In this document: positions 26,980 through 40,494 of the stretch, one piece after another
How the letters are laid out: the number at the start of each line of letters is the position of its first letter
How positions within the stretch are numbered: position 1 is the first letter of the stretch
Source: Rebecca billardiae RCC1528
Lineage: Eukaryota > Protista > Haptophyta
Direction: 5' to 3'
Assembly: GCA_965240325.2 (NCBI GenBank)
Contig: OZ251234.1
Span: 124,001 to 188,000 of the forward strand
DNA length: 64,000 bases
Notes under the pieces: model-generated
The model's database searches: none
What the model was told of the DNA's origin: nothing
Seen by the model: the letters and a program-made list of their open reading frames with translations, nothing else
Position numbers and translations under genes: made by a program

Positions 26980-29337
26980 TCACTGGGCGCCGCAGCTCGT
27001 CTGCAGCTCGCGCTCGGGCGGCAGGCTCGCGAGCCGGTGCCGCACCCACGCGCGCGCGCGCGCCTCGACCTTGGCCGCGCCCCCGCCCGCCGCGCGCGCG
27101 TCGCTCAGCAGCGCGCGCAGCGGGCGCGCGAGCTCGTCGGGCGCTAGCACCGCCGCCGCGCCGCCGCCCCCACCGTCCGCATCGAACGGGTGGCGCACCG
27201 CCGCGATGGCTGCCTGGAGCGGCGCGTCCTCCCCCGCCTCCACGGCCTCGGCAATCTCCCGCAGCGCGGCCGTGCGCAGCACGCGCGCAGGCACGGCCGC
27301 GCGCACGCGCGAGACGCGCTCCGCCTCGGCGGCGGCGGCGGCGCTGGGCGCGGCGGGCGCGGCCTCGCCGCTCGCGCCCGCCTCGCACTCGGCCCCGAGC
27401 CCGCCGCCGTCGATCAGCCGCGCGCACGCCGCCGCGTACGCCCGCAGCCACTCAGCCAGCGCCGCCTCCGAGCCAGCGGCCGCGTCGCTGGCGCGCGCTA
27501 CGTGCCACGCGGCGCCGATGATGGCGCCGTCCGCGTCGGCGGCGGCCGCGGCGGGCGCGAGCAGCTCGATGTCGGCGAGCGCGCGCGAGGCGAGCGGGTA
27601 GTCCGCGCCGGACGCCTCGAGCCACTCGTGCCACCCGCGCACCACCGCCTCCGCCATCGCCTCCGCGTCCGCGTCCGCACCCGCCGCGGCCTCGTCCGCG
27701 GCCGGCAGGCCGAGCCGCAGCCGCGCGCGCGCGCTCGCGCATGCGTCGAACGCGGCGTCGAAGCTCTCGAGGGCTCGGCGCGCGCGCTCGGCGGGCAGCC
27801 ACGCGGGCTCGCCCTCCGCGCCGCCCTCCGCGCCGCCCTCCGCGCCCGCGCGCATCCACGCGCGCGCGTCCGCGCCGCGCTCCCCCGCCCCGTCCGGGAG
27901 GCCACCCAGCGAGTCTGCAAGCCGCTCGAGCGCCCAGCGCGCGGCGCGCCGCTGCGAGCCAAACGCGTACCGGCGCTCGGCGTCGATGAGGTTGGGCGCG
28001 AAGGAGGCGTTGTACCGGTCGACGAAGCCGAAGACGTTCAGGTCGATCGTCACGCCGATCAGCGAGAGGTTGTCCGTGTTCATCACGCCGTGCGCAAACC
28101 CCGCCGCCATCCACGCGCCCACCAGCGCGCCCGTGCGCTCGGCGACGCGCGTCAGCAGACACTCGAACGCGCCCAGCCGGCCGAGCGCGGGGTCGGCGGC
28201 GCAGGAGGGCGCGGCGTCGCGCGGCGCGAAGAAGCAGAGCTCGCGCGCGCGCCGCGGCACGCGCAGCCGCTCGAGCGGCACCGAGCGCGCGCTCTCGTCC
28301 CCCGCCGCCTCGAGTCGCGCGAGCACGGCCAGCGCGTGCCGCGCCACGCGCTCCGCGCCCGCGGGCCCCTGCGTGCGCGCGGCGAGCTGCAGGGAGCCGA
28401 AGCGGAGGAAGGAGGGGGCGAGGCGCGCGAGCACGCCGGCGCGCACGCGCGCCGGACGCCCCGTGTACCACTCGTCGCGCACGATCCGATCCTCCTCGCC
28501 CGGCGTCGCGACGAGCGCGAGCGAGCGCGCGCTCGGCACGGCCGCGCCCACCAGCGCAGAGTCAGCAGCGAGCTCTCGCGCGCCGTTCTTCAGAGCGGCG
28601 CGGCCGTCGCCGCGGCGCGAGAAGGGGGTGCGGCCCGCGCCCTTGAGCGAGAGCTCGAGGGGCGGCGCCCCGCGCGCGCCCGCCAGCACGCCGAGCGAGA
28701 TGGCCCGCCCGTCGCCGAGCTGCCCCGCCCACGAGCCGAACTGATGGCCGCCGTAGTTGTGTGCGTACGGCAGCACGCCTGCCGGCAGCGCGCGCCCGCC
28801 GAGCAGCTCGGCGAAGGCCTGGCTCGAGGCGTCGGCGGCGTCGAGGCCGAGGCGCTCGAGCAGCTCCCCCTTACACGCCACGACGCGCACGCCGCGCGAG
28901 CGCGGCGGCGTCGGCCAGACGGGCGCGGCGACGCTCGCGTTGGGCACAGCCTGCGGCCCGAGCAGCTGCGCGCTCACGCCGCCGCGCTCAGCGGTGGGCT
29001 CGGGCAGCGCGTGCACGGCGAGCGCCGCGAGCGGACTCTGCTCGGGTGGGGCCCAGTCGAGATGCGCCTCCAGCCGCGCCATGCCCGTGCCGGCGCTCGT
29101 GCGCAGGTTGTCTGCGCGAGCGTGCAGCGCGGCGCGCGGGTGCTCGGAGCACCCGCCATCGCCACCGACGCCGTCGGCGCACAGCTCGGCCGCGGCGCAG
29201 TCACACCGGCGCGAGCACGTCGGCCCGTACCAGCCAGGGGCGCACGCCCCGTACGCCGGCTGGCAACCCACCGCGCGGAGCACCAGTGCCAACACGCACG
29301 CAGTGGAGGTGGCGGCGAGAAGCGGGCGACCGGCCAT
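26980..29337 (-). CDS. SELENOO: SelO/YdiU-family pseudokinase (AMPylase-like) with N-terminal signal peptide and EGF/laminin-like Cys module
   Basis: PYAHNYGGHQFGSWAGQLGDGRAISLG, LKGAGRTPFSRRGDGRA, FLRFGSLQ, GFAHGVMNTDNLSLIGVTID and C-terminal TSCGAQ. Intronless. An upstream in-frame ATG at 29379 is also possible. Confidence 0.92.
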   Translation of the reverse strand: MAGRPLLAATSTACVLALVLRAVGCQPAYGACAPGWYGPTCSRRCDCAAAELCADGVGGDGGCSEHPRAALHARADNLRTSAGTGMARLEAHLDWAPPEQSPLAALAVHALPEPTAERGGVSAQLLGPQAVPNASVAAPVWPTPPRSRGVRVVACKGELLERLGLDAADASSQAFAELLGGRALPAGVLPYAHNYGGHQFGSWAGQLGDGRAISLGVLAGARGAPPLELSLKGAGRTPFSRRGDGRAALKNGARELAADSALVGAAVPSARSLALVATPGEEDRIVRDEWYTGRPARVRAGVLARLAPSFLRFGSLQLAARTQGPAGAERVARHALAVLARLEAAGDESARSVPLERLRVPRRARELCFFAPRDAAPSCAADPALGRLGAFECLLTRVAERTGALVGAWMAAGFAHGVMNTDNLSLIGVTIDLNVFGFVDRYNASFAPNLIDAERRYAFGSQRRAARWALERLADSLGGLPDGAGERGADARAWMRAGAEGGAEGGAEGEPAWLPAERARRALESFDAAFDACASARARLRLGLPAADEAAAGADADAEAMAEAVVRGWHEWLEASGADYPLASRALADIELLAPAAAAADADGAIIGAAWHVARASDAAAGSEAALAEWLRAYAAACARLIDGGGLGAECEAGASGEAAPAAPSAAAAAEAERVSRVRAAVPARVLRTAALREIAEAVEAGEDAPLQAAIAAVRHPFDADGGGGGAAAVLAPDELARPLRALLSDARAAGGGAAKVEARARAWVRHRLASLPPERELQTSCGAQ

Positions 29338-29799
29338 CGCGCGACTGATATGCGCGATTCCCCTTCCGGGCTCCGGCATCTAGGGGCGCGCCGGCGCCCA
29401 CCGGTGACGATGATCGCGATCTCAAATGACAAATCGAATCTCGCTCCGCGCCAGATCGGCCCGACTCCCAACGGCCGCCCGCGGAGAGCGGCGGAGAGTC
29501 ATCCTCACGACCTCACTCGTACGTACCTACCGTTTTTAAATGAGCAGGCTGGAGGCTGGAGTCGACTCAGTAGTCTGTCCGACGACATACGTACAGAATT
29601 ATTGTCGTACGTAGTCGTCAAACGTGGTGACCGGAATTGTCGTCGGCCGGCACGGCGTAGACGTAGTAGTGCCACGAGGCAGCCACGGGCCGGGGCCGAC
29701 AACTGCCATGCGAGAGACCATGCAACGTGCGCACGAGGACAAGCGTGCGGGGAGGAGGCGGCTCGGGCGCGGCGCCATGAGCGAGCGCGCTCGACGTGC

Positions 29800-31410
29800 T
29801 CAGCACGCGCCCGACGCGATGGTGGTCAGCGCCTCGAGCGACGCGACGCGCGAGGGCGGCGTCAAGCTCACGTTGAAGTCGTCCCACGTGAGGCCGAGCG
29901 CGTTGAGCATTTCGAGCGAGGGCGCACGCGGCACGCGGCACGCGTCCGGCGCCCCCGCAAGGTGCTGCTGCAGCTTTTGCCTCGAGTCGGAGTGCGAGAG
30001 CTGCAGCTGCATCGCCTCAGACGACCGGTTGCGCGGCAGGCTGGCGAGCACGGCGCGCGGCTCGGCGGGCGGCCCGCTCGCCGGCGCGCCAACGTCCGCA
30101 TCGTCCGACTCGCCCTCGTCGCGCATCTCCACCGACGCGGCGGCGGCGGCCTCCGCGCCCGCCTTCTCCGTGATCACGCGGCGCAGGTCGCCGAGGACGG
30201 ACTCGACGAGTCGTTCGCGCCCGTGCTCGCCCAGGCGGCTCATCGCCGGCGTCTGCATCTCCGTGTCCGCGAGGATCATGAGCTGCTGCGCGAGCTCGCA
30301 GATGCGGTCGCGCCGCAGCGCGGGTGCGGACAGCGCGGCCGCGGCGGGCTGGTGCGGGCTGTGCTGCGCGCCGAGCAGCGAGGGGAGCGTGCTCGTCGGC
30401 AGCCCGCCGATCTGCGAGAGGGCCATGTACGGCGCCTGCTGCGCGCCGCCCATCGCGCTGCTCATCGCCATCGACGCCGCCGCCATCGACGACGGTGGCA
30501 TGCCGAGGGTGGCCGTGGCGATGGGGCCGGCGCCGCCGCCGGCGCGGAGGTGGGGCGAGGCGTAGCTGTGGTGGTGGCTCTCGCCGCCCGCGCGCTTGGC
30601 GGCCAGGTGCAGCCCGCTCGCCAGCGGCCCGCCGACGAGCTGCGCCGCGGCCGCCTGCTGCCGCAGCTGCTGCAGCTGCGGGTCGGGCTGCAGCTGCGAG
30701 CCGTACAGCCGCATCGGCCCGGGGCCGGCGCTCTCGACCGCGCCCATGTGCGGCATGCAGGTGGGCACGCCGCCGCTGCCCGCGGCCGCCGCGACGGCCA
30801 TCGGGTGGTGCGACTGCAGCCGGCGGCGCAGCGTGTGGTACCGGTTCTTCACGGCGTGGCCGGTGCGGCCAGGCAGCAGGTTCTTGATCTGGCACCACTT
30901 CTGCGAGCGGCAATAGGGCAGCGAGCGCGCGCGCGGACGCGGGCGGGTGAGACGCCGGGTGCGCGGGCGGATGCGTGCGCGGGCGGGTGTGCGACGTGAC
31001 GCGATGCGGCGCGACGCAACGACGCAAGCGCGCGCCACACGGCGCTCGAACCGCGCCGCGCTCGCAGGCGCGGTGCGCGGTGCGCGCATGCGGCCGCGCA
31101 CCTGGCCCATCACGTGCAGCGCCTGGATGATGATGGCGTCCTCCTCGGGAGTCCAGTCGGTCTTCTTGACGTCGGGCACGAGGTGGTTGTACCACCGCTC
31201 GCGGCACTGCCAGTCTTTGCGCGAGCCCATGTGCGACGCGATCAGCGACCACTGCCGCGCGCCGTACTTTGCCACGACGTCGCGCAGCTGTGCGTCCTCC
31301 TCCGCCGTCCACGTGCGGCGGGAGAAGTGCTTGGTGCGGGACTGCGGGTCCATGTCCGCCGCCGTCGAGTTCTCGGGAGTCAGCATCTCGACGAGCTTGG
31401 GCGACAGCAT
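29800..31410 (-). CDS. R2R3-type Myb transcription factor, copy A; exons 31410(or 31353)-31102, 30900-29800
   Basis: WTAEEDAQLRDVVAKYGARQWSLIASHMGSRKDWQCRERWYNHL / WTPEEDAIIIQALHVMGQ|KWCQIKNLLPGRTGHAVKNRYH. Intron 31101-30901. Confidence 0.9.
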   Translation of the reverse strand: MLSPKLVEMLTPENSTAADMDPQSRTKHFSRRTWTAEEDAQLRDVVAKYGARQWSLIASHMGSRKDWQCRERWYNHLVPDVKKTDWTPEEDAIIIQALHVMGQVRGRMRAPRTAPASAARFERRVARACVVASRRIASRRTPARARIRPRTRRLTRPRPRARSLPYCRSQKWCQIKNLLPGRTGHAVKNRYHTLRRRLQSHHPMAVAAAAGSGGVPTCMPHMGAVESAGPGPMRLYGSQLQPDPQLQQLRQQAAAAQLVGGPLASGLHLAAKRAGGESHHHSYASPHLRAGGGAGPIATATLGMPPSSMAAASMAMSSAMGGAQQAPYMALSQIGGLPTSTLPSLLGAQHSPHQPAAAALSAPALRRDRICELAQQLMILADTEMQTPAMSRLGEHGRERLVESVLGDLRRVITEKAGAEAAAAASVEMRDEGESDDADVGAPASGPPAEPRAVLASLPRNRSSEAMQLQLSHSDSRQKLQQHLAGAPDACRVPRAPSLEMLNALGLTWDDFNVSLTPPSRVASLEALTTIASGAC

Positions 31411-32860: not shown

Positions 32861-34071
32861 CAAGTCACGCATATCTCGGTCCGCACGGCCACGAGCCCAC
32901 CTGTTCGCCATCCTTCCGCCAGTCCGCCACCAGCCGGGGCGCCTGGCGGCGGAACAACACCCCGTGGAACGGGTGGCCCCGGGGAGTCCCCTCGGCCTCA
33001 CCGCCACCCTGCGCGTTCGGCGCCCAAGACGGAGTTCCAACGCGCCAAGCGCCTGCCTGCCTTGCACTCGGCGTGCATGCCACGCGCGCCTGCGCCGTGC
33101 AGCGTACCGCAAGGAAGGAGCCCGACCCGCCAAGCGTGTCACGCGCGACTGGCTGTTGGGCGAGTTCAGCCCGGTCTGCGCCGTTCGACCTGACAGCGAA
33201 AACGTCGTGATAGGCATTGCACATAATGCGCGCATTACCGCTTTTGGTGAACGGTCCTCATGCGAAGAGTAATGCGCGCATTATGTGCAGCAGGCCGCAC
33301 CACGGCAGCTCGGCGCTGCCGCGCGATGTCATCGAGGAGCGGCGTTGCCGCGTTGAGGCTCGTCAAACGGTCCGCGGGCCGACCGTCCGACACTCACGTC
33401 GACGTCAGCACATGGCCACAGGCTGGCGGCTCATCATCCACATTGCGATGCCAGGGTACGGTTAAGGACTACTTTGCCTGGACTCAGTCAACAAGCCGTG
33501 TAACGGTTCAACGCCCAGGGCGCGCGTGCCGGGTAGGCGTCACTACTCTGCTGTCGCGGCGGTCCGCGTGACCGAGTACCGACTCCCTATCGTCGGCTCC
33601 GCGCCCGCGGCGAATCCGATATGACCCGGTTGAGCGATTTAGTGTCACAGCCACCGCCAGTCCGAGGCGCCCGGCGGCGCCACTCGGCACTGACGACTGT
33701 GTCTTGCAGCCGCGGGCGCCACCGATGACTACTTGGCAGTACTTGAGAGTGAGTTGAGACTCAGACTACGTCTACTGTCGATGACCCTAAAGAGTAAAGT
33801 CTGCTAAGTCTTAGTCTAAGATGTACAGTAAGTAGGCCATGCATTCATCAGATCACTATGCACTTGTCCGAGCAAAGGACTGTCATCAAGTCCGAGCAAG
33901 GGGTGACCGAGATGCGCATTGAATTATATATAATATAATACTATATTAAATTATTTTATGAGTATTCAAAAATTTGACTTACCGGATGTAATGACTATGA
34001 GTATTGAGTGATCGGAGTCCCTGAGCCGGATTAATGATTATCCGGATTACCTGATGATTTAATTTACTCAG

Positions 34072-34386
34072 TGTCAGGGAACGCGTCTCGAGGCTTGACG
34101 GTCGCGAGGTCGTGGACGAGCTTCGGCTCTTTTTTTTGTGGTGGTGAGCTCAGCGTGTTTTGAGTGATCGGCTCATGTTTCGTTCACGAGTTTCGGAAGC
34201 ATCTAGAATGCTTCCAGATGCCGCCGCCAGCCATGCTGTCCTGCTGTATTTTAGGATGAGGTTCAGGTTGATTTTGGAGGATTTTGTGCGAGCGCCGCCG
34301 CAGCGGTCGCGCCGCCACTGTGTGACTGCGAGTAAAATGTTGGATTGGAAATTGGAAATCAGTGTAGATTGGCGATTCCTTTGACA
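34072..34386 (-). repeat. 3' LTR
   Basis: Identical to 37219-37533 except G34362/C37509. Contains the hairpin GGAAGCAT-CTAGA-ATGCTTCC (34195-34215). Confidence 0.96.
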
Positions 34387-34399
34387 CCCCCCCTCAATC
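34387..34399 (-). other. Polypurine tract
   Basis: Minus strand reads GATTGAGGGGGGG directly before the TG of the 3' LTR, a typical copia arrangement. Confidence 0.9.
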
Positions 34400-34651
34400 C
34401 AATATGCGCTCGTCTGTGAGGACTAAGCTTGGATTATGAGTGATTTTGGGCTTGGTATTGTTTGTGCATCTGTGTGCATGAGTGAATTGGAGTCAGTAAT
34501 GGTTGCCAATGCCAGGATACGGGTCATGTGCTGGGACTTCCGTGTGACGGTTTTGGGTAACCCGAGTCAGTCCTGGGCTTATTTGCACCATATGTTCACT
34601 CTTTGGCCTTGATTTTGGACCTTGTTATTGGGTCATGCCCTGCCTTGATAG

Positions 34652-37219
34652 TTAATCATAGGCATCCGGAGCAGGAATATCCAGGAAATGGATACGCTCC
34701 TTGGGAAATTTGTTGGCTCCCTTGTTTTTGCCTTTGTTGTAATTGTTGGCCTTGGGGCGTAGCTCTGGGTGGAGCTTCCAACACTGCTGGGCAGTATGGT
34801 CCTTGAGACCACAGTGAGTGCACCGTTTGCCGGTGTCCGAGTTATTCGGCCCGCTCTCGCCATTGGCTGGAGCCTTTTGGGCCTGAGCGGCGAAGACTTC
34901 GGCGCCCTCAAAGTCACCGCGTCGCCGCGTGCCTTGCTGATAATCAGCATTTTGGCGTATCTTGGAATAATTTTCGGTCTCTCTCCCCTTGGTATTGTTC
35001 TGATGGAGTAGCTTCATTGAGCCGTGCCGTTTGTAGGCATCTTCCATCTGGGCCATTATCTGGTCAGTGTTATCCACACATTGCTCGGGCGTGAGCGCTC
35101 CGAAGTGCGAGATAACTGACTCGTAGACTTGGGGATGGTCGTGCATGCTGTTATACAGCTTGAAGACCAACATCGTAGCATCGTCCAGATTCCCATATCG
35201 AGATGAGCGGACTTGCTCGACGGATTTCTTGATAATGTCCGATGCGCCAATGGGCGACACCTTTGTCGGGTATAACTTCAGGAATTCATCCCTGAGTTCG
35301 GACATAGTTGTGATCTTGAGCTCGCGCTCAAATATCTGTAGCAGCAGCGCCAGATCCAAGTAGTTCTTGGTCGGATCGCTGATGTGCAGCTTCGATTCCA
35401 GATAGGCGAATAACTGAGGCTCAATAGAGTCCTTCAGCTGCTTGAATATCGCTGCCGCAGATCGATCGTAGACCGATCCGATCTTGTTGGCGTCAGCGTT
35501 GTCAGCCTTGTATGGATCGATTTTGGCTGCGTCTTTCACCCATTTGTCTTTGGCAATGAGTTGAAAGCCGGATAGCTTGCTATCCTTGGGCTCCATTATG
35601 TCAGGTGTGACATCTGAGGATTTGCCCTTGTAGTAGGTGCTCACTTCTGCGAGTGCATCCCGTATCGCGCTGTGTACCGCGCGCTTGGATTTCAGAGCCG
35701 ACTGTGTCAGCTTGTGTGTGGCGGGTGTATCCACTCCTGCCGAGGATTCGCGTGCCATGAACACACGTTCCTTCTTGGTTGGATTAGAGTCTGTGACTCC
35801 TCCTTCGATGACTATCCAGTCACGTTTCTTCGACTCAAGTGCATTGGTCGATGTGTCGCGCGCGCTCTGTGGCGATTCGCGCTCTACCTTCGAGCGAGGA
35901 GTGACCCTCGTCGAGGCTGTGGTGCCTTCTTTGGGCTTCTTCACGCTCGTTCTGTCCAGCGGTGATGCATGTGCATCCGCGGCAGCTTCGGCGGAATACT
36001 CTTCCTTGCAAGAGTGTGGCGTTGTGATGGCTGACGCAGCTGATGCATGCGCACGCGCGTCGCGCTCGCCAACTTGGTTTTGCTGCGGCTTTGCCGTCAA
36101 GCAGGTGTATGATGCCCCCCCTGCATCGCATGCGCTTCCTACGTTCGACGCGAGTCGATACGTGCCAGACGAGGACTCTGCCGTCTCTGCGGCGGTCATC
36201 TCGCGGCTGCTTGTGTCGCTCGTGGCGAGCAGCTCGGCTTCGGAAGCCATCGTGAGGCTGGTAATTTTGGGGTAAACGTATTTGTTTGGGTCAGGCGCAT
36301 CAATAATAAATGCGGCCGCTGACTTGATGCTTGAGCTCGCTGTGACAGAGTCACGTGTCGTAGCATCTTGGAGCATAGTTTGCTCTGCCAGACCATACAG
36401 GTCGTTTGCGTCGCACTCATCGGTGTTAATGTCATCGTTCGATCGGTCAGACTCAGACACAGAGTCGTGCGAGCGAGGCTGCAGACTGACTGCGGTCACG
36501 ACCGCGCTGTCATTGGCGGCGGCCAGAAGGCCAGCACGCCGAGCAGCGTTGGCAGGCTCGAGGGCCTCGACGGTCGGAGCGGCATCAGCGGCAGCAGCGT
36601 CGAGCGCTACATCTGCCCCGGAACGCTCGGTGACCTCGTTCGATGACTCGGAGGCCGCAAGGCACTCCTTGAGCTGCGGGCTCTCAGCCGCGCGCTCTTG
36701 AACCGCGCTCGCGGGCGCAGAGTCCCGGGCGGTAGTTGTTGAGATCCCCTGCGCAACGACGTGCGTGCGGATGGAGTGGCGCGATGGCGGGGGATGCGAG
36801 CGGCAACGCTCCTCCTCACCGCGCTGTGCGCGAACCTCCTCCTCAAGGTGATCCTTGATGTCGGCTCGAGGCCTTGCGTGCGATGCAGCATTGCGCGCAT
36901 ACGACACGATGCTGCCTGAGTTCAGGTCAGCGATGTTGCCAGGCCCGGAGGCGCTGGAGATGGGCTTGCGGAGAAGCGTGAGCTTCTCGCCTTGCCGGTT
37001 CTTCTCAGCCTGCATGCCCCTCAGGGCAGCGGCGAGGTAGTCTGGCGTGCGCTTGCGCGCGATCGCCGATGAGCAGCGCGGCAATGCCGCGCGCTCTGCC
37101 ACGCCTGGCTTCAACCCAATGAGGGGAGCAACTGGGGCGGGCTGATGGCCGTTCACGTCCTTGCCGCTGTTCTCGTCGTCTCCATCCTTGCCCAAGTTCT
37201 CCCAGCACCGTGCTAGCAT
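34652..37219 (-). CDS. gag: Gag-like protein, 855 aa, with long low-complexity N-terminal extension
   Basis: C-terminal CTHCGLKDHTAQQCWKLHPELRPK is a copia-style CX2CX4HX4C knuckle. It is preceded by a helical gag-like region (AIFKQLKDSIEPQLFAYL). No PR/INT/RT/RH motifs follow. Confidence 0.88.
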   Translation of the reverse strand: MLARCWENLGKDGDDENSGKDVNGHQPAPVAPLIGLKPGVAERAALPRCSSAIARKRTPDYLAAALRGMQAEKNRQGEKLTLLRKPISSASGPGNIADLNSGSIVSYARNAASHARPRADIKDHLEEEVRAQRGEEERCRSHPPPSRHSIRTHVVAQGISTTTARDSAPASAVQERAAESPQLKECLAASESSNEVTERSGADVALDAAAADAAPTVEALEPANAARRAGLLAAANDSAVVTAVSLQPRSHDSVSESDRSNDDINTDECDANDLYGLAEQTMLQDATTRDSVTASSSIKSAAAFIIDAPDPNKYVYPKITSLTMASEAELLATSDTSSREMTAAETAESSSGTYRLASNVGSACDAGGASYTCLTAKPQQNQVGERDARAHASAASAITTPHSCKEEYSAEAAADAHASPLDRTSVKKPKEGTTASTRVTPRSKVERESPQSARDTSTNALESKKRDWIVIEGGVTDSNPTKKERVFMARESSAGVDTPATHKLTQSALKSKRAVHSAIRDALAEVSTYYKGKSSDVTPDIMEPKDSKLSGFQLIAKDKWVKDAAKIDPYKADNADANKIGSVYDRSAAAIFKQLKDSIEPQLFAYLESKLHISDPTKNYLDLALLLQIFERELKITTMSELRDEFLKLYPTKVSPIGASDIIKKSVEQVRSSRYGNLDDATMLVFKLYNSMHDHPQVYESVISHFGALTPEQCVDNTDQIMAQMEDAYKRHGSMKLLHQNNTKGRETENYSKIRQNADYQQGTRRRGDFEGAEVFAAQAQKAPANGESGPNNSDTGKRCTHCGLKDHTAQQCWKLHPELRPKANNYNKGKNKGANKFPKERIHFLDIPAPDAYD

Positions 37220-37533
37220 GTCAGGGAACGCGTCTCGAGGCTTGACGGTCGCGAGGTCGTGGACGAGCTTCGGCTCTTTTTTTTGTGGTGGTGAGCTCAG
37301 CGTGTTTTGAGTGATCGGCTCATGTTTCGTTCACGAGTTTCGGAAGCATCTAGAATGCTTCCAGATGCCGCCGCCAGCCATGCTGTCCTGCTGTATTTTA
37401 GGATGAGGTTCAGGTTGATTTTGGAGGATTTTGTGCGAGCGCCGCCGCAGCGGTCGCGCCGCCACTGTGTGACTGCGAGTAAAATGTTGGATTGGAAATT
37501 GGAAATCACTGTAGATTGGCGATTCCTTTGACA
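37219..37533 (-). repeat. 5' LTR
   Basis: Direct repeat of 34072-34386 with TG...CA termini. Confidence 0.96.
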
Positions 37534-37697
37534 CTCAGGAATTGTACGGTCAGCAGTAACGTCCACTGAGTTCGGCGAGGCTCGTGTACTAACAGGGTGA
37601 CACAGTCTTAATGCCATATACTAGGAGGCGGCTCGCCGGCGCAGCGCCACGTCCACGAGCGAGCTCAGCCGGCGCTGCCGCGGCGCGACCGCGGTGC

Positions 37698-38541
37698 TCA
37701 GTGCGCGCCCGACGCGATGGTGGTCAGCGCCTCGAGCGACGCGACGCGCGAGGGCGGCGTCGAGCTCACGTTGAGGTCGTCCCACGTAAGGCCGAGCGCG
37801 TTGAGCGCCTCGAGCGAGGGCGCGCGCGGCACGCCGCGCGCGTCCGCGTCCGCAACCGCCGCCGCGAGGTGCTGCTGCAGCATTTGCCTCGAGTCGGAGC
37901 GCGAGAGCTGCGCGTGCAGCGCCGAGAGCTGCAGCTGCATCGTCTCAGACGACGGGTTGCGCGGCAGGCTGGCGAGCGCGGCGCGCAGCTCGGCGGGCGG
38001 CCCGCTCGCCGGCGCACTCTCGTCCGCATCGTCCGACTCGCCCTCATCGCGCGTCTCCACCGACGCGGCGGCGGCGGCCTCCGCGCCCGCCTTCTCCGTG
38101 ATCGCGCGGCGCAGGTCGCCGAGGACGGACTCGACGAGTCGTTCGCGCCCGTGCTCGCCCAGGCGGCTCATCGCCGGCGTCTGCATCTCCGTGTCCGCGA
38201 GGATCATGAGCTGCTGCGCGAGCTCGCAGATGCGGTCGCGCCGCAGCGCAGCCGTCGACGGGTCGGGGCCGCTGGTGGCGGCGCGCGAGGCCGCGGCGCA
38301 GATCGTCGACATGAGCGCGCCCTGCGGCGGCGCGACCGCCGAGGCGGCGGGCTGCTGCACGTGGCCGTGCGGCGAGGCGCTCGTCGACGGCGCGGCGCTG
38401 GTCGGCACCTGGGCCTGGTGCAGCCCGGCGAGCCCAGCAGCCGCGTGCGGCGCGGCGCTCGTCGCGACGTGCGACGACACGGCGGTGCCCAGGAAGGGCG
38501 ACGCCTGCTGCGGCTGCGGCTGCGGCTGCGGCTGCGGCTGC

Positions 38542-38577
<36 letters not shown>

Positions 38578-39622
38578 GCGAAAAATGCGGCTGCGGCGGC
38601 ATGGTGCGGGTTGAGCTGCGCGCCGAGCAGCGAGGGGAGCGTGCTCGTCGGCAGCCCGCCGATCTGCGAGAGGGCCATGTACGGCGCCTGCTGCGCGCCG
38701 CCCATCGCGCTGCTCATCGCCATCGACGCCGCCGCCATCGACGACGGTGGCATGCCGAGGGTGGCCGTGGCGATGGGGCCGGCGCCGCCGCCGGCGCGGA
38801 GGTGGGGCGAGGCGTAGCTGTGGTGGTGGCTCTCGCCGCCCGCGCGCTCGGTAACCAGGTGCAGCCCGCTCGCCGGCGGCCCGCCGACGAGCTGCGCCGC
38901 GGCCGCCTGCTGCCGCAGCTGCTGCAGCTGCGGGTCGGGCTGCAGCTGCGAGCCGTACAGCCGCATCGGCCCGGGGCCGGCGCTCTCGACCGCGCCCATG
39001 TGCGGCATGCAGGTGGGCACGCCGCCGCTGCCCGCGGCCGCCGCGACGGCCATCGGGTGGTGCGACTGCAGCCGGCGGCGCAGCGAGTGGTACCGGTTCT
39101 TCACGGCGTGGCCGGTGCGGCCAGGCAGCAGGTTCTTGATCTGGGACCACTTCTGCGAGCGGCAACGGGGCAGCGAGCGCGCGCGCGGACGCGGGCGGGT
39201 GAGACGCCGGGTGCGCGGGCGGGCGTGCGATGTGACGCGATGCGGCGCGACGCAACGACGCAAGCGCGCGCCACACGGCGCTCGAACCGCGCCGCGCTCG
39301 CAGGCGCGGTGCGCGGTGCGCGCATGCGGCCGCGCACCTGGCCCATCACGTGCAGCGCCTGGATGATGATGGCGTCCTCCTCGGGAGTCCAGTCGGTCTT
39401 CTTGACGTCGGGCACGAGGTGGTTGTACCACCGCTCGCGGCACTGCCAGTCTTTGCGCGAGCCCATGTGCGACGCGATCAGCGACCACTGCCGCGCGCCG
39501 TACTTGGCCACGACGTCGCGCAGCTGTGCGTCCTCCTCCGCCGTCCACGTGCGGCGGGAGAAGTGCTTGGTGCGGGACTGCGGGTCCATGTCCGCCGCCG
39601 TCGAGTTCTCGGGAGTCAGCAT
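37698..39622 (-). CDS. R2R3-type Myb transcription factor, copy B (with polyQ/QP tract); exons 39622(or 39589)-39338, 39152-37698
   Basis: Near-identical Myb repeats to copy A (KWSQ vs KWCQ; HSLR vs HTLR). Intron 39337-39153. Carries an extra ~110-aa Gln-rich segment. Confidence 0.92.
38505..38576 (-). repeat. (CAG)n/(CAGCCG)n tract encoding polyQ-(QP)n in Myb copy B
   Basis: Direct reading of the ctgctg.../ctgcgg... repeats. Confidence 0.9.
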
Positions 39623-40494
39623 CTCGACGAGAGGCGAGCGGCCTGCTGGCGTCGCGAGCGTGTGTGCGCGCATGCGCGTCAGCCGGCAGTGCGTGCATGC
39701 GTGCGAGAGCGTCGCGCCCACCCGCGCGCGGGCAAGCGCGCGAGCGTGCCCCGCGAGCGCGCGCGGCCGGCTGGGACGGCGAAGAAACGTGCGGTCGCAC
39801 TGTCGGTGCGCGTTCGCTCGCAGAGTTTGGCGAGCTGCGCGGTGGCGCGCACCGGCGTTCAGGCGACAGGCAGCACGCGCGAGCGGTGTTTCGAGCGCGG
39901 AAGGTGGAGTTTGCGGTGAGATCATCATCTGGCTGGAGAGGATTCCAGTAGCTGCGATCTATTGCCGGAGATTCAGAACGGTGAGATCTCCCTCCAGGGA
40001 GATGACTTTTTCGGGAGGGTTTGTGACGGCGCACCGGCGCTGAACGGGGAATTATATTCAACGCCTCTACGATCTGGATGCAATCAGGGGTGAATAGGGC
40101 GAGAAGCGATGTTTTTGTTCGGCGATCCTATTGGCGGTAGGTTTGCGTCTCTCTGGTTCGTCGTTTTTGTATTTAATGAGCCTCCTGAACATTCGGAGAT
40201 GTTCCAGTGCGGTTCAGGTTTTTGCACGGCAAATCCTAGGAAACGCCAACAATTACTACCAAAATGGTCTCTCTGAGCAGTATTGTTGTGCAATGTGCAG
40301 GTACTTTTCACTTTTTTGTAGTGAGCTTTCGTCGATCGAGCACCGGCAAAAACTTCGAAAACGGAGAGCTTTCCGGCGCTCAAGGGTCTTCTTAAAAGGT
40401 GAGATCGCTGATGGGCGCCGATTCACCAATTAATGGACGTCGTTGATCAGGCAGTATGAACTTTCCAGTCATGAGTCGATGTTCGTCTACCCAC

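Follow-up and report, generated by a model that had tools for sequence, protein, structure and literature searches.

A young LTR retroelement with a single long Gag-like reading frame and no pol in the haptophyte Rebecca billardiae

The definition of TR-GAG elements – long terminal repeat (LTR) retrotransposons that carry gag as their only gene – comes from coffee, and such elements were found in 23 plant genomes (PMC4350172). For algae, the same study predicted four families in Ectocarpus, a brown alga, but none in Chondrus, a red alga (Chaparro et al. 2015, PMC4350172), and a manual curation published in 2025 confirmed Copia families of Ectocarpus whose only open reading frame (ORF) is gag-like, Copia-N1_Ec32 and Copia-11_Ec32 (PMC12477816). 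Among haptophytes, a transposable element (TE) survey of Tisochrysis lutea lists as non-autonomous LTR elements only terminal-repeat retrotransposons in miniature (TRIM) and large retrotransposon derivatives (LARD) (PMC5963040). This article concerns an LTR element with one long Gag-like ORF, located in a 64,000-nucleotide stretch of the haptophyte Rebecca billardiae RCC1528 (GenBank assembly GCA_965240325.2, contig OZ251234.1, positions 124,001 to 188,000), referred to below as the window and numbered from its first letter. A preliminary description of this DNA placed the element beside the TR-GAG elements of land plants, which was incomplete, given the published Ectocarpus families (PMC4350172, PMC12477816).

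The element is young and structurally complete as an LTR retroelement, with a single long ORF but without pol. The reading that we favour, with moderate confidence, is that it represents a non-autonomous gag-only (TR-GAG-like) LTR retrotransposon, recently inserted on the minus strand of an AT-rich intergenic island, and that its layout is probably a property of a family and not of this copy alone.

Its likeness to TR-GAG elements lies in the LTRs, the 5-bp target-site duplication (TSD), the polypurine tract (PPT), the length below 4 kb (3462 bp from LTR to LTR), the single ORF in gag position and the lack of pol, with mobilisation in trans presumed. Unlike TR-GAG elements, which are defined and detected through Pfam Gag domains (Retrotrans_gag, UBN2 family), it has an ORF without a recognisable domain of this kind; this ORF is also very long (855 aa), owing to a low-complexity N-terminal extension of 480 aa, and is not accompanied by a canonical primer-binding site (PBS).

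With the Gag proteins of Ty1/copia elements (Pseudoviridae), the encoded protein shares an extended zinc-knuckle motif that is common to several Retrotran_gag_2 proteins and to the gag-protease ORF of an autonomous copia element. In yeast Ty1, as here, the ORF starts at or before the position of the PBS. However, the ORF in the window has no Retrotran_gag_2/UBN2 match, the motif also occurs in Gag proteins of the Ty3/gypsy type, and there is no order of pol domains to read. LARD and TRIM elements, finally, resemble the window element in their LTRs, their TSD, their lack of pol and a need for a helper that the window element presumably shares, but their internal regions are non-coding, whereas here we find an 855-codon ORF with 0 stop codons against about 14 expected. 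Because its interior is coding, the window element is neither a LARD nor a TRIM.

Element structure and its single reading frame

The two LTRs, at 34072–34386 and 37219–37533, measure 315 bp each and are identical at 314 positions (blastn E ~1e-162), the sole mismatch setting G at 34362 against C at 37509. On the plus strand they run from TGTCA to TGACA – that is, they have TG..CA ends and a 5-bp terminal inverted repeat – and a perfect CTCAG TSD lies immediately outside them, at 34067–34071 on the left and 37534–37538 on the right (the chance of such a 5-bp match being 1/1024). As the ORF is on the minus strand, minus is also the sense strand of the element, which makes the right-hand repeat the 5′ LTR and the left-hand one, reading TGTCAAAGG...CCCTGACA in the sense direction, the 3′ LTR. 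The divergence between the LTRs is K = 1/315 = 0.0032 (about 0.3%), from which the age of the insertion follows as T = K/2µ. Both the near-identical LTRs and the perfect TSD had been noted in the preliminary description, and both are borne out.

Directly adjoining the 3′ LTR is a G-rich PPT (34387–34400, minus strand), with the sense sequence GGATTGAGGGGGGG (...TTGGATTGAGGGGGGG up to the LTR). It had been characterised as copia-style; the tract and its position stand, but the style is not verifiable. At the other end of the internal region, the bases following the 5′ LTR are TGCTAGCACGGTGCTGGGAG, with the first TGG 15 nt past the LTR, and the expected PBS position (37196–37218, minus strand) reads TGCTAGCACGGTGCTGGGAGAAC in the sense direction. 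Self-priming of the kind used by Tf1 finds no support in duplex energy: 34% of shuffled sequences pair with the LTR as well as the PBS region does.

Each LTR also contains a perfect 8-bp hairpin, GGAAGCAT-CTAGA-ATGCTTCC (34195–34215, minus strand, with the second copy at 37342–37362), which may be a functional LTR element. ARAGORN reports a ‘tRNA-Pyl (cta)’ of 78 nt centred on this hairpin in both LTRs (34164–34241 and 37311–37388, minus strand). This call is probably false, given that Rfam returns no tRNA match at E ≤ 1 and that the stem in question is the atypical 8-bp hairpin. ARAGORN finds no further tRNA in the window.

The sole long ORF occupies 34652–37219 on the minus strand and encodes 855 aa without interruption. 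Its stop codon lies at 34652–34654, and its ATG spans the boundary of the 5′ LTR, the A being the final base of the LTR (context ...CCCTGACA|TGCTAGC). This one ORF takes up 2568 of the 2832 bases of the internal region. In its frame there are 0 stop codons in either half, against 5–21 stops per half in the other five frames; shuffling of the N-terminal half gives a mean of 13.7 stops, and zero-stop sequences arose in 0 of 20000 shuffles. With LTRs that differ by about 0.3%, there has been too little time since insertion for decay, and the copied RNA must have included the whole ORF; given such young LTRs, it is mainly this that the intactness of the ORF shows.

The protein can be divided into three parts, all encoded on the minus strand: an N-terminal extension (residues 1–479, 35783–37219), a helical core (residues 531–733, 35021–35629) and a CCHC zinc knuckle with a CWKLHPELRP tail (residues 800–822, 34754–34822). 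The knuckle proper, CTHCGLKDHTAQQC, is of the form CX2CX4HX4C and covers residues 800–813. The ORF stops 42 residues further on, in agreement with the earlier claim of an uninterrupted 855-aa ORF that ends just after a zinc knuckle, in which the strand – minus – had gone unstated.

The N-terminal extension is rich in Ala and Ser (17% and 12%, respectively), open in this frame alone and probably disordered; GC content at third codon positions (GC3) declines along it from 0.80 to 0.59. It has no matches in Pfam, in the PDB or in the rest of the window. In the large protein collections it was covered through the whole-length word search only, and this word-index search, with residues 1–855, gave no match among proteins of 470–1496 aa. 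Looked up as exact proteins, neither the 855-aa product nor those of the neighbouring SelO and DnaJ ORFs gave a record.

The stop codon is separated from the 3′ LTR by 265 bp (34387–34651, minus strand), which the preliminary description had put at about that figure, and the three sense frames of this non-coding tail yield only short, stop-ridden reads. Such a tail leaves no room for pol. The absence of pol that had been claimed is thus confirmed: no protease, reverse transcriptase, RNase H or integrase domain was detected in the element by Pfam, in the frames of the tail or by tblastn. A tblastn search of the window with a Ty3-type polyprotein matched the knuckle only and found no helper element there.

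The Gag-like protein and its marine relative

What kind of protein the ORF encodes is best approached from its C-terminal end. A length-unrestricted phmmer search with residues 480–855 against 1.84 billion protein cluster representatives gave 36 matches, of which 35 are confined to the knuckle and the CWKLHPELRP tail. Among the proteins matched through the knuckle, five carry the copia-type domain Retrotran_gag_2 and three carry Retrotrans_gag or Ty3_capsid. One of them (P0022) is the gag-protease ORF of an autonomous copia element whose next ORF contains RVT_2, while another (P0021) is a Ty3-like polyprotein. With relatives among both copia-type and Ty3/gypsy-type Gags, the knuckle does not assign the element to a superfamily; copia is not established, and the preliminary assignment to it is not supported. 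Judged by these sequence matches, the knuckle itself is of the retrotransposon-nucleocapsid type.

P0011 and P0025, both from Logan contigs, and P0026 are short, stand-alone Gag-like proteins of 195–291 aa that end soon after a CW(K/E/D)LHPEL(R/K/N)P motif. P0025 and P0026 match Pfam Retrotran_gag_2, and P0011 has no Pfam match.

Taken together, the position of the ORF, the order of its domains and its nucleocapsid knuckle make Gag the best reading of the protein, with the capsid part unproven. The earlier designation ‘Gag’ is borne out in part, by the gag position, the helical character and the CCHC nucleocapsid knuckle, but a Gag or capsid domain is found neither by Pfam, PDB and hhalign searches nor by structure prediction. 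Two AlphaFold models of the protein reach a pLDDT (AlphaFold’s per-residue confidence measure) of 38 and 52, so that the prediction of an all-helical core is one of low confidence. A sub-threshold Pfam match to LEF-4 (E 0.015–0.18) was judged to be due to chance.

Beyond the knuckle, the body of the putative Gag has only one relative among the 1.84 billion representatives, and it comes from marine metagenomes. This is P0002, a protein of 335 aa encoded on a JGI contig (3300009023; L001 below), which aligns with the helical core at 26–31% identity (BLASTP pairwise E = 1e-18; phmmer E = 9.8e-10). A second version of it, P0157, is 94% identical to P0002 and encoded on a Tara Oceans METAG scaffold (L004). 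At 335–366 aa, both are far shorter than the protein in the window, and Met1 of P0002 aligns at about residue 480 of the 855-aa ORF – in other words, the N-terminal extension is absent from the relative.

The surroundings of the gag gene on these two contigs are informative about the layout of the unit to which it belongs. On L001, GAGCGAGGGGGGC lies about 150 nt beyond the gag stop codon at 1236, and next comes a repeat that starts with TGTC (TGTCGCGG...). Some 240 nt across this junction between G-run and repeat are also found upstream of gag on L004 (L004 1–242 against L001 1365–1601, 86% identity), and L004 492–1747 equals L001 1–1253. The resulting cyclic order is gag, short tail, G-run, TGTC repeat, leader and gag again, an order that leaves no room for pol.

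The repeat appears to end with ...CCACGACA, directly before the gag ATG, and to be followed by TGGTACCAACACTGGG, which has a PBS-like TGG start. If so, the LTR of this family would have the ends TGTCG...CGACA, and its gag ATG would straddle the LTR boundary as it does in the window element: in the marine family the ATG follows ...CGACA, and in R. billardiae it straddles ...TGACA.

The marine family and the window element are thus alike in the homology of the helical core, the domain order, the C-terminal CCHC knuckle and the stop codon soon after it, as well as in the short tail, the G-run, the TGTC start of the repeat, the gag ATG right after ...GACA and the lack of pol. They differ in that P0002 and P0157 have no N-terminal extension and have a knuckle tail reading CFKKAKDE, not CWKLHPELRP, and there is no nucleotide similarity between the two. 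A comparison of P0002 with P0157 gives a dN/dS (ω) of about 0.4, a value that, with only 7 differences outside the first 30 codons, has no power. A profile built from the C-terminal part together with P0002 recovers P0002 alone; scans of metagenome and viral contigs with it returned knuckle-level matches (L002 and L003) or none.

Weighing the explanations

On the favoured reading, a transcript running from LTR to LTR would be driven by the 5′ LTR and translated into a Gag-like protein in which a helical core and a nucleocapsid knuckle follow an N-terminal extension of 480 aa that is disordered. Through its knuckle, this protein would bind and package the element’s own RNA, with protease, reverse transcriptase/RNase H and integrase supplied in trans by an autonomous element located in another part of the genome. 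The CTCAG duplication would then be the result of integration, a 5-bp duplication being of the kind left by an integrase.

A number of observations weigh against this reading. Some concern the nature of the protein: Pfam detects no Gag domain, either with the whole ORF at E ≤ 1 or with sub-pieces at E ≤ 10, and the copia-type domain Retrotran_gag_2/UBN2 likewise gives no Pfam match. An hhalign comparison with eight Gag-type matches aligns the knuckle alone. Sequence and profile searches of the PDB find only knuckles – a CCHC protein, dArc1 and retroviral nucleocapsids – and no capsid, and a Foldseek search of the PDB with the AlphaFold models, which are too poor for comparison, has a best E of 1.5.

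Others concern the element and the way it would replicate. No canonical TGG PBS is found next to the 5′ LTR, where the junction bases are TGCTAGCACGG. The element is present in a single copy, with none elsewhere in the 64 kb by blastn, and the identity of its LTRs and its TSD are compatible with a deletion of pol that took place during reverse transcription or after insertion.

The marine relative, finally, is documented on short pieces of DNA. Only about 240 nt of its repeat can be traced to either side of gag, on two short contigs from different samples, and L004 may reflect tandem copies, as an array or a pair, or a cycle that the assembly made through an LTR. On L001, GC content shifts from about 60% to about 46% after 1601, the point where the similarity to L004 ends, and the sequence past that point stems either from a chimeric join in the assembly or from host DNA next to a truncated repeat. 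The region from 1601 to 2535 encodes a HesB/IscA-type Fe–S biosynthesis protein.

Among the alternatives, the one that survives best – though we regard it as unlikely – is that the window holds a one-off defective copy, in which an autonomous Gag-Pol element lost pol once, through a template switch or an early internal deletion, and which never propagated. The single copy seen in the window agrees with this, and identical LTRs and a TSD would be equally expected of such a copy. Against it stand the clean end of the ORF, 42 aa past the knuckle, and a tail without any fragment of pol. The distant relative bears on the question as well: the one relative that can be detected for this Gag likewise lacks pol between its repeats, which makes a one-off deletion less likely. 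Nor did the length-unrestricted search of 1.84 billion proteins reveal a Gag-Pol polyprotein carrying this core. With both carriers of the core lacking pol and no such Gag-Pol found, weight moves from a single deletion to a gag-only family or lineage. To the preliminary proposal that the pol-less form may itself have transposed, the layout of the marine relative lends indirect support.

A less probable origin, which would account for the loss of pol in another way, is the retro-copying of a spliced subgenomic gag mRNA from an autonomous copia-like element, with R-U5-PBS and PPT-U3-R kept. Drosophila copia and several plant Ty1/copia elements do produce spliced gag-only RNAs, and the whole and precise removal of pol with retention of both ends would fit such a product. 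The same event could also lie at the origin of a gag-only family that propagates. However, the sequence bears no mark of an exon junction, there is no parent element by which donor and acceptor sites could be defined, and L001 and L004 carry an equal layout at the DNA level in metagenomes, which argues that it is not merely a form of the transcript.

More doubtful still is the proposal that the ORF is not a Gag at all but belongs to a LARD-like non-autonomous LTR element that captured an ORF, or acquired one de novo, ending by chance in a CCHC knuckle. The failure to find a Gag or capsid family, the low confidence of the structural models and the empty fold search speak for it, as does the N-terminal part of 479 residues, which is without relatives and whose composition is nearer to that of the host (GC3 up to 0.80). 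However, the knuckle and its extended tail are of the retrotransposon-Gag type, a helical domain followed by a knuckle in the first ORF after the 5′ LTR is the order expected of Gag, and the homologue P0002 has the same order in a similar, repeat-flanked unit.

An assembly artefact – the collapse of a longer element or a chimeric join between LTR copies – has nothing positive in its favour and is highly improbable: the sequence is continuous, with zero N across the window, the TSD matches across the element, the ORF is unbroken and the single mismatch between the LTRs speaks for their separate assembly.

The reading of the element as a gag-only retrotransposon whose layout is shared by a family can be taken one step further, albeit tentatively. 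The window element and P0002/P0157 might be two branches of an old, self-sustaining Gag-only LTR lineage in marine protists. Such a lineage, a possibility to which we give limited credence, would be characterised by LTR ends of the form TGTC(A/G)...GACA, a G-run PPT, an ATG straddling the end of the LTR and an orphan Gag core, its members being 26–31% identical and always pol-less.

Genomic setting and implications

Over most of its length the window has a GC content of 65–84% (about 72%), and the host ORFs in it (SelO, DnaJ and Myb-like) have a GC3 of 0.82–0.94. With 49–66% GC, the element forms the largest low-GC island in the window, and no other island of this kind exceeds 0.8 kb. It sits in an AT-rich intergenic patch of 28–46% GC, and the surrounding AT-rich island (33700–34071 and 37539–37640) has 28–54% GC per 100 bp. 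No inverted repeats, which would be a sign of a host transposon at the target, were found between its left and right flanks.

A Myb-like ORF on the same strand (37698–40061, minus) has its stop codon about 160 bp upstream of the element, and the insertion may be in or beside the 3′ end of that gene. The Myb-like gene is part of a segmental duplication (37683–39631 and 29785–31395), in which 38576–39631 matches 30324–31395 at 96.5% and 37683–38249 matches 29785–30321 at 89%; the C-terminal ends of the two ORFs are nearly identical. The duplication does not provide a paralogous empty site, as the homology halts 145 bp before the insertion point. Within the Myb-like ORF, simple repeats at 38600–38800 encode poly-Q and (PQ)n when read on the minus strand; the plus strand gives poly-L/(RL)n in one frame and poly-C/(GC)n in another. 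Such repeats are one reason for the long, spurious and overlapping ORFs found on the two strands of this GC-rich window. Further along, the ORF for the protein adenylyltransferase SelO (26980–29379, minus strand, 799 aa) has best database relatives that are only 53–54% identical; the nearest named ones are from the haptophyte Diacronema lutheri (53%; KAG8468406.1, cluster of P0038) and the dinoflagellate Durusdinium trenchii (48%).

As gag-only LTR elements have already been published from angiosperms and Ectocarpus, what is unusual about the window element is its orphan Gag core and its 480-aa N-terminal extension, to which an apparent distant pol-less relative in ocean metagenomes would add a third feature. 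The insertion is young and probably active. Because its Gag escapes Pfam, TE pipelines based on domains would call it a LARD or leave it as unknown.

One question posed by gag-only LTR elements is why an element that parasitises another parasite retains a capsid gene of its own. In plants, TR-GAG families are not conserved from one species to another and seem to originate again and again, each time from different autonomous elements. If the pol-less marine relative holds, gag-only elements can also persist and diversify as a lineage, and the class would extend to a poorly sampled, very GC-rich group of protists. Should the two prove to be branches of one old Gag-only lineage, elements of this kind would not be deletion derivatives with a short life but obligate and long-lived parasites that depend on autonomous retrotransposons.

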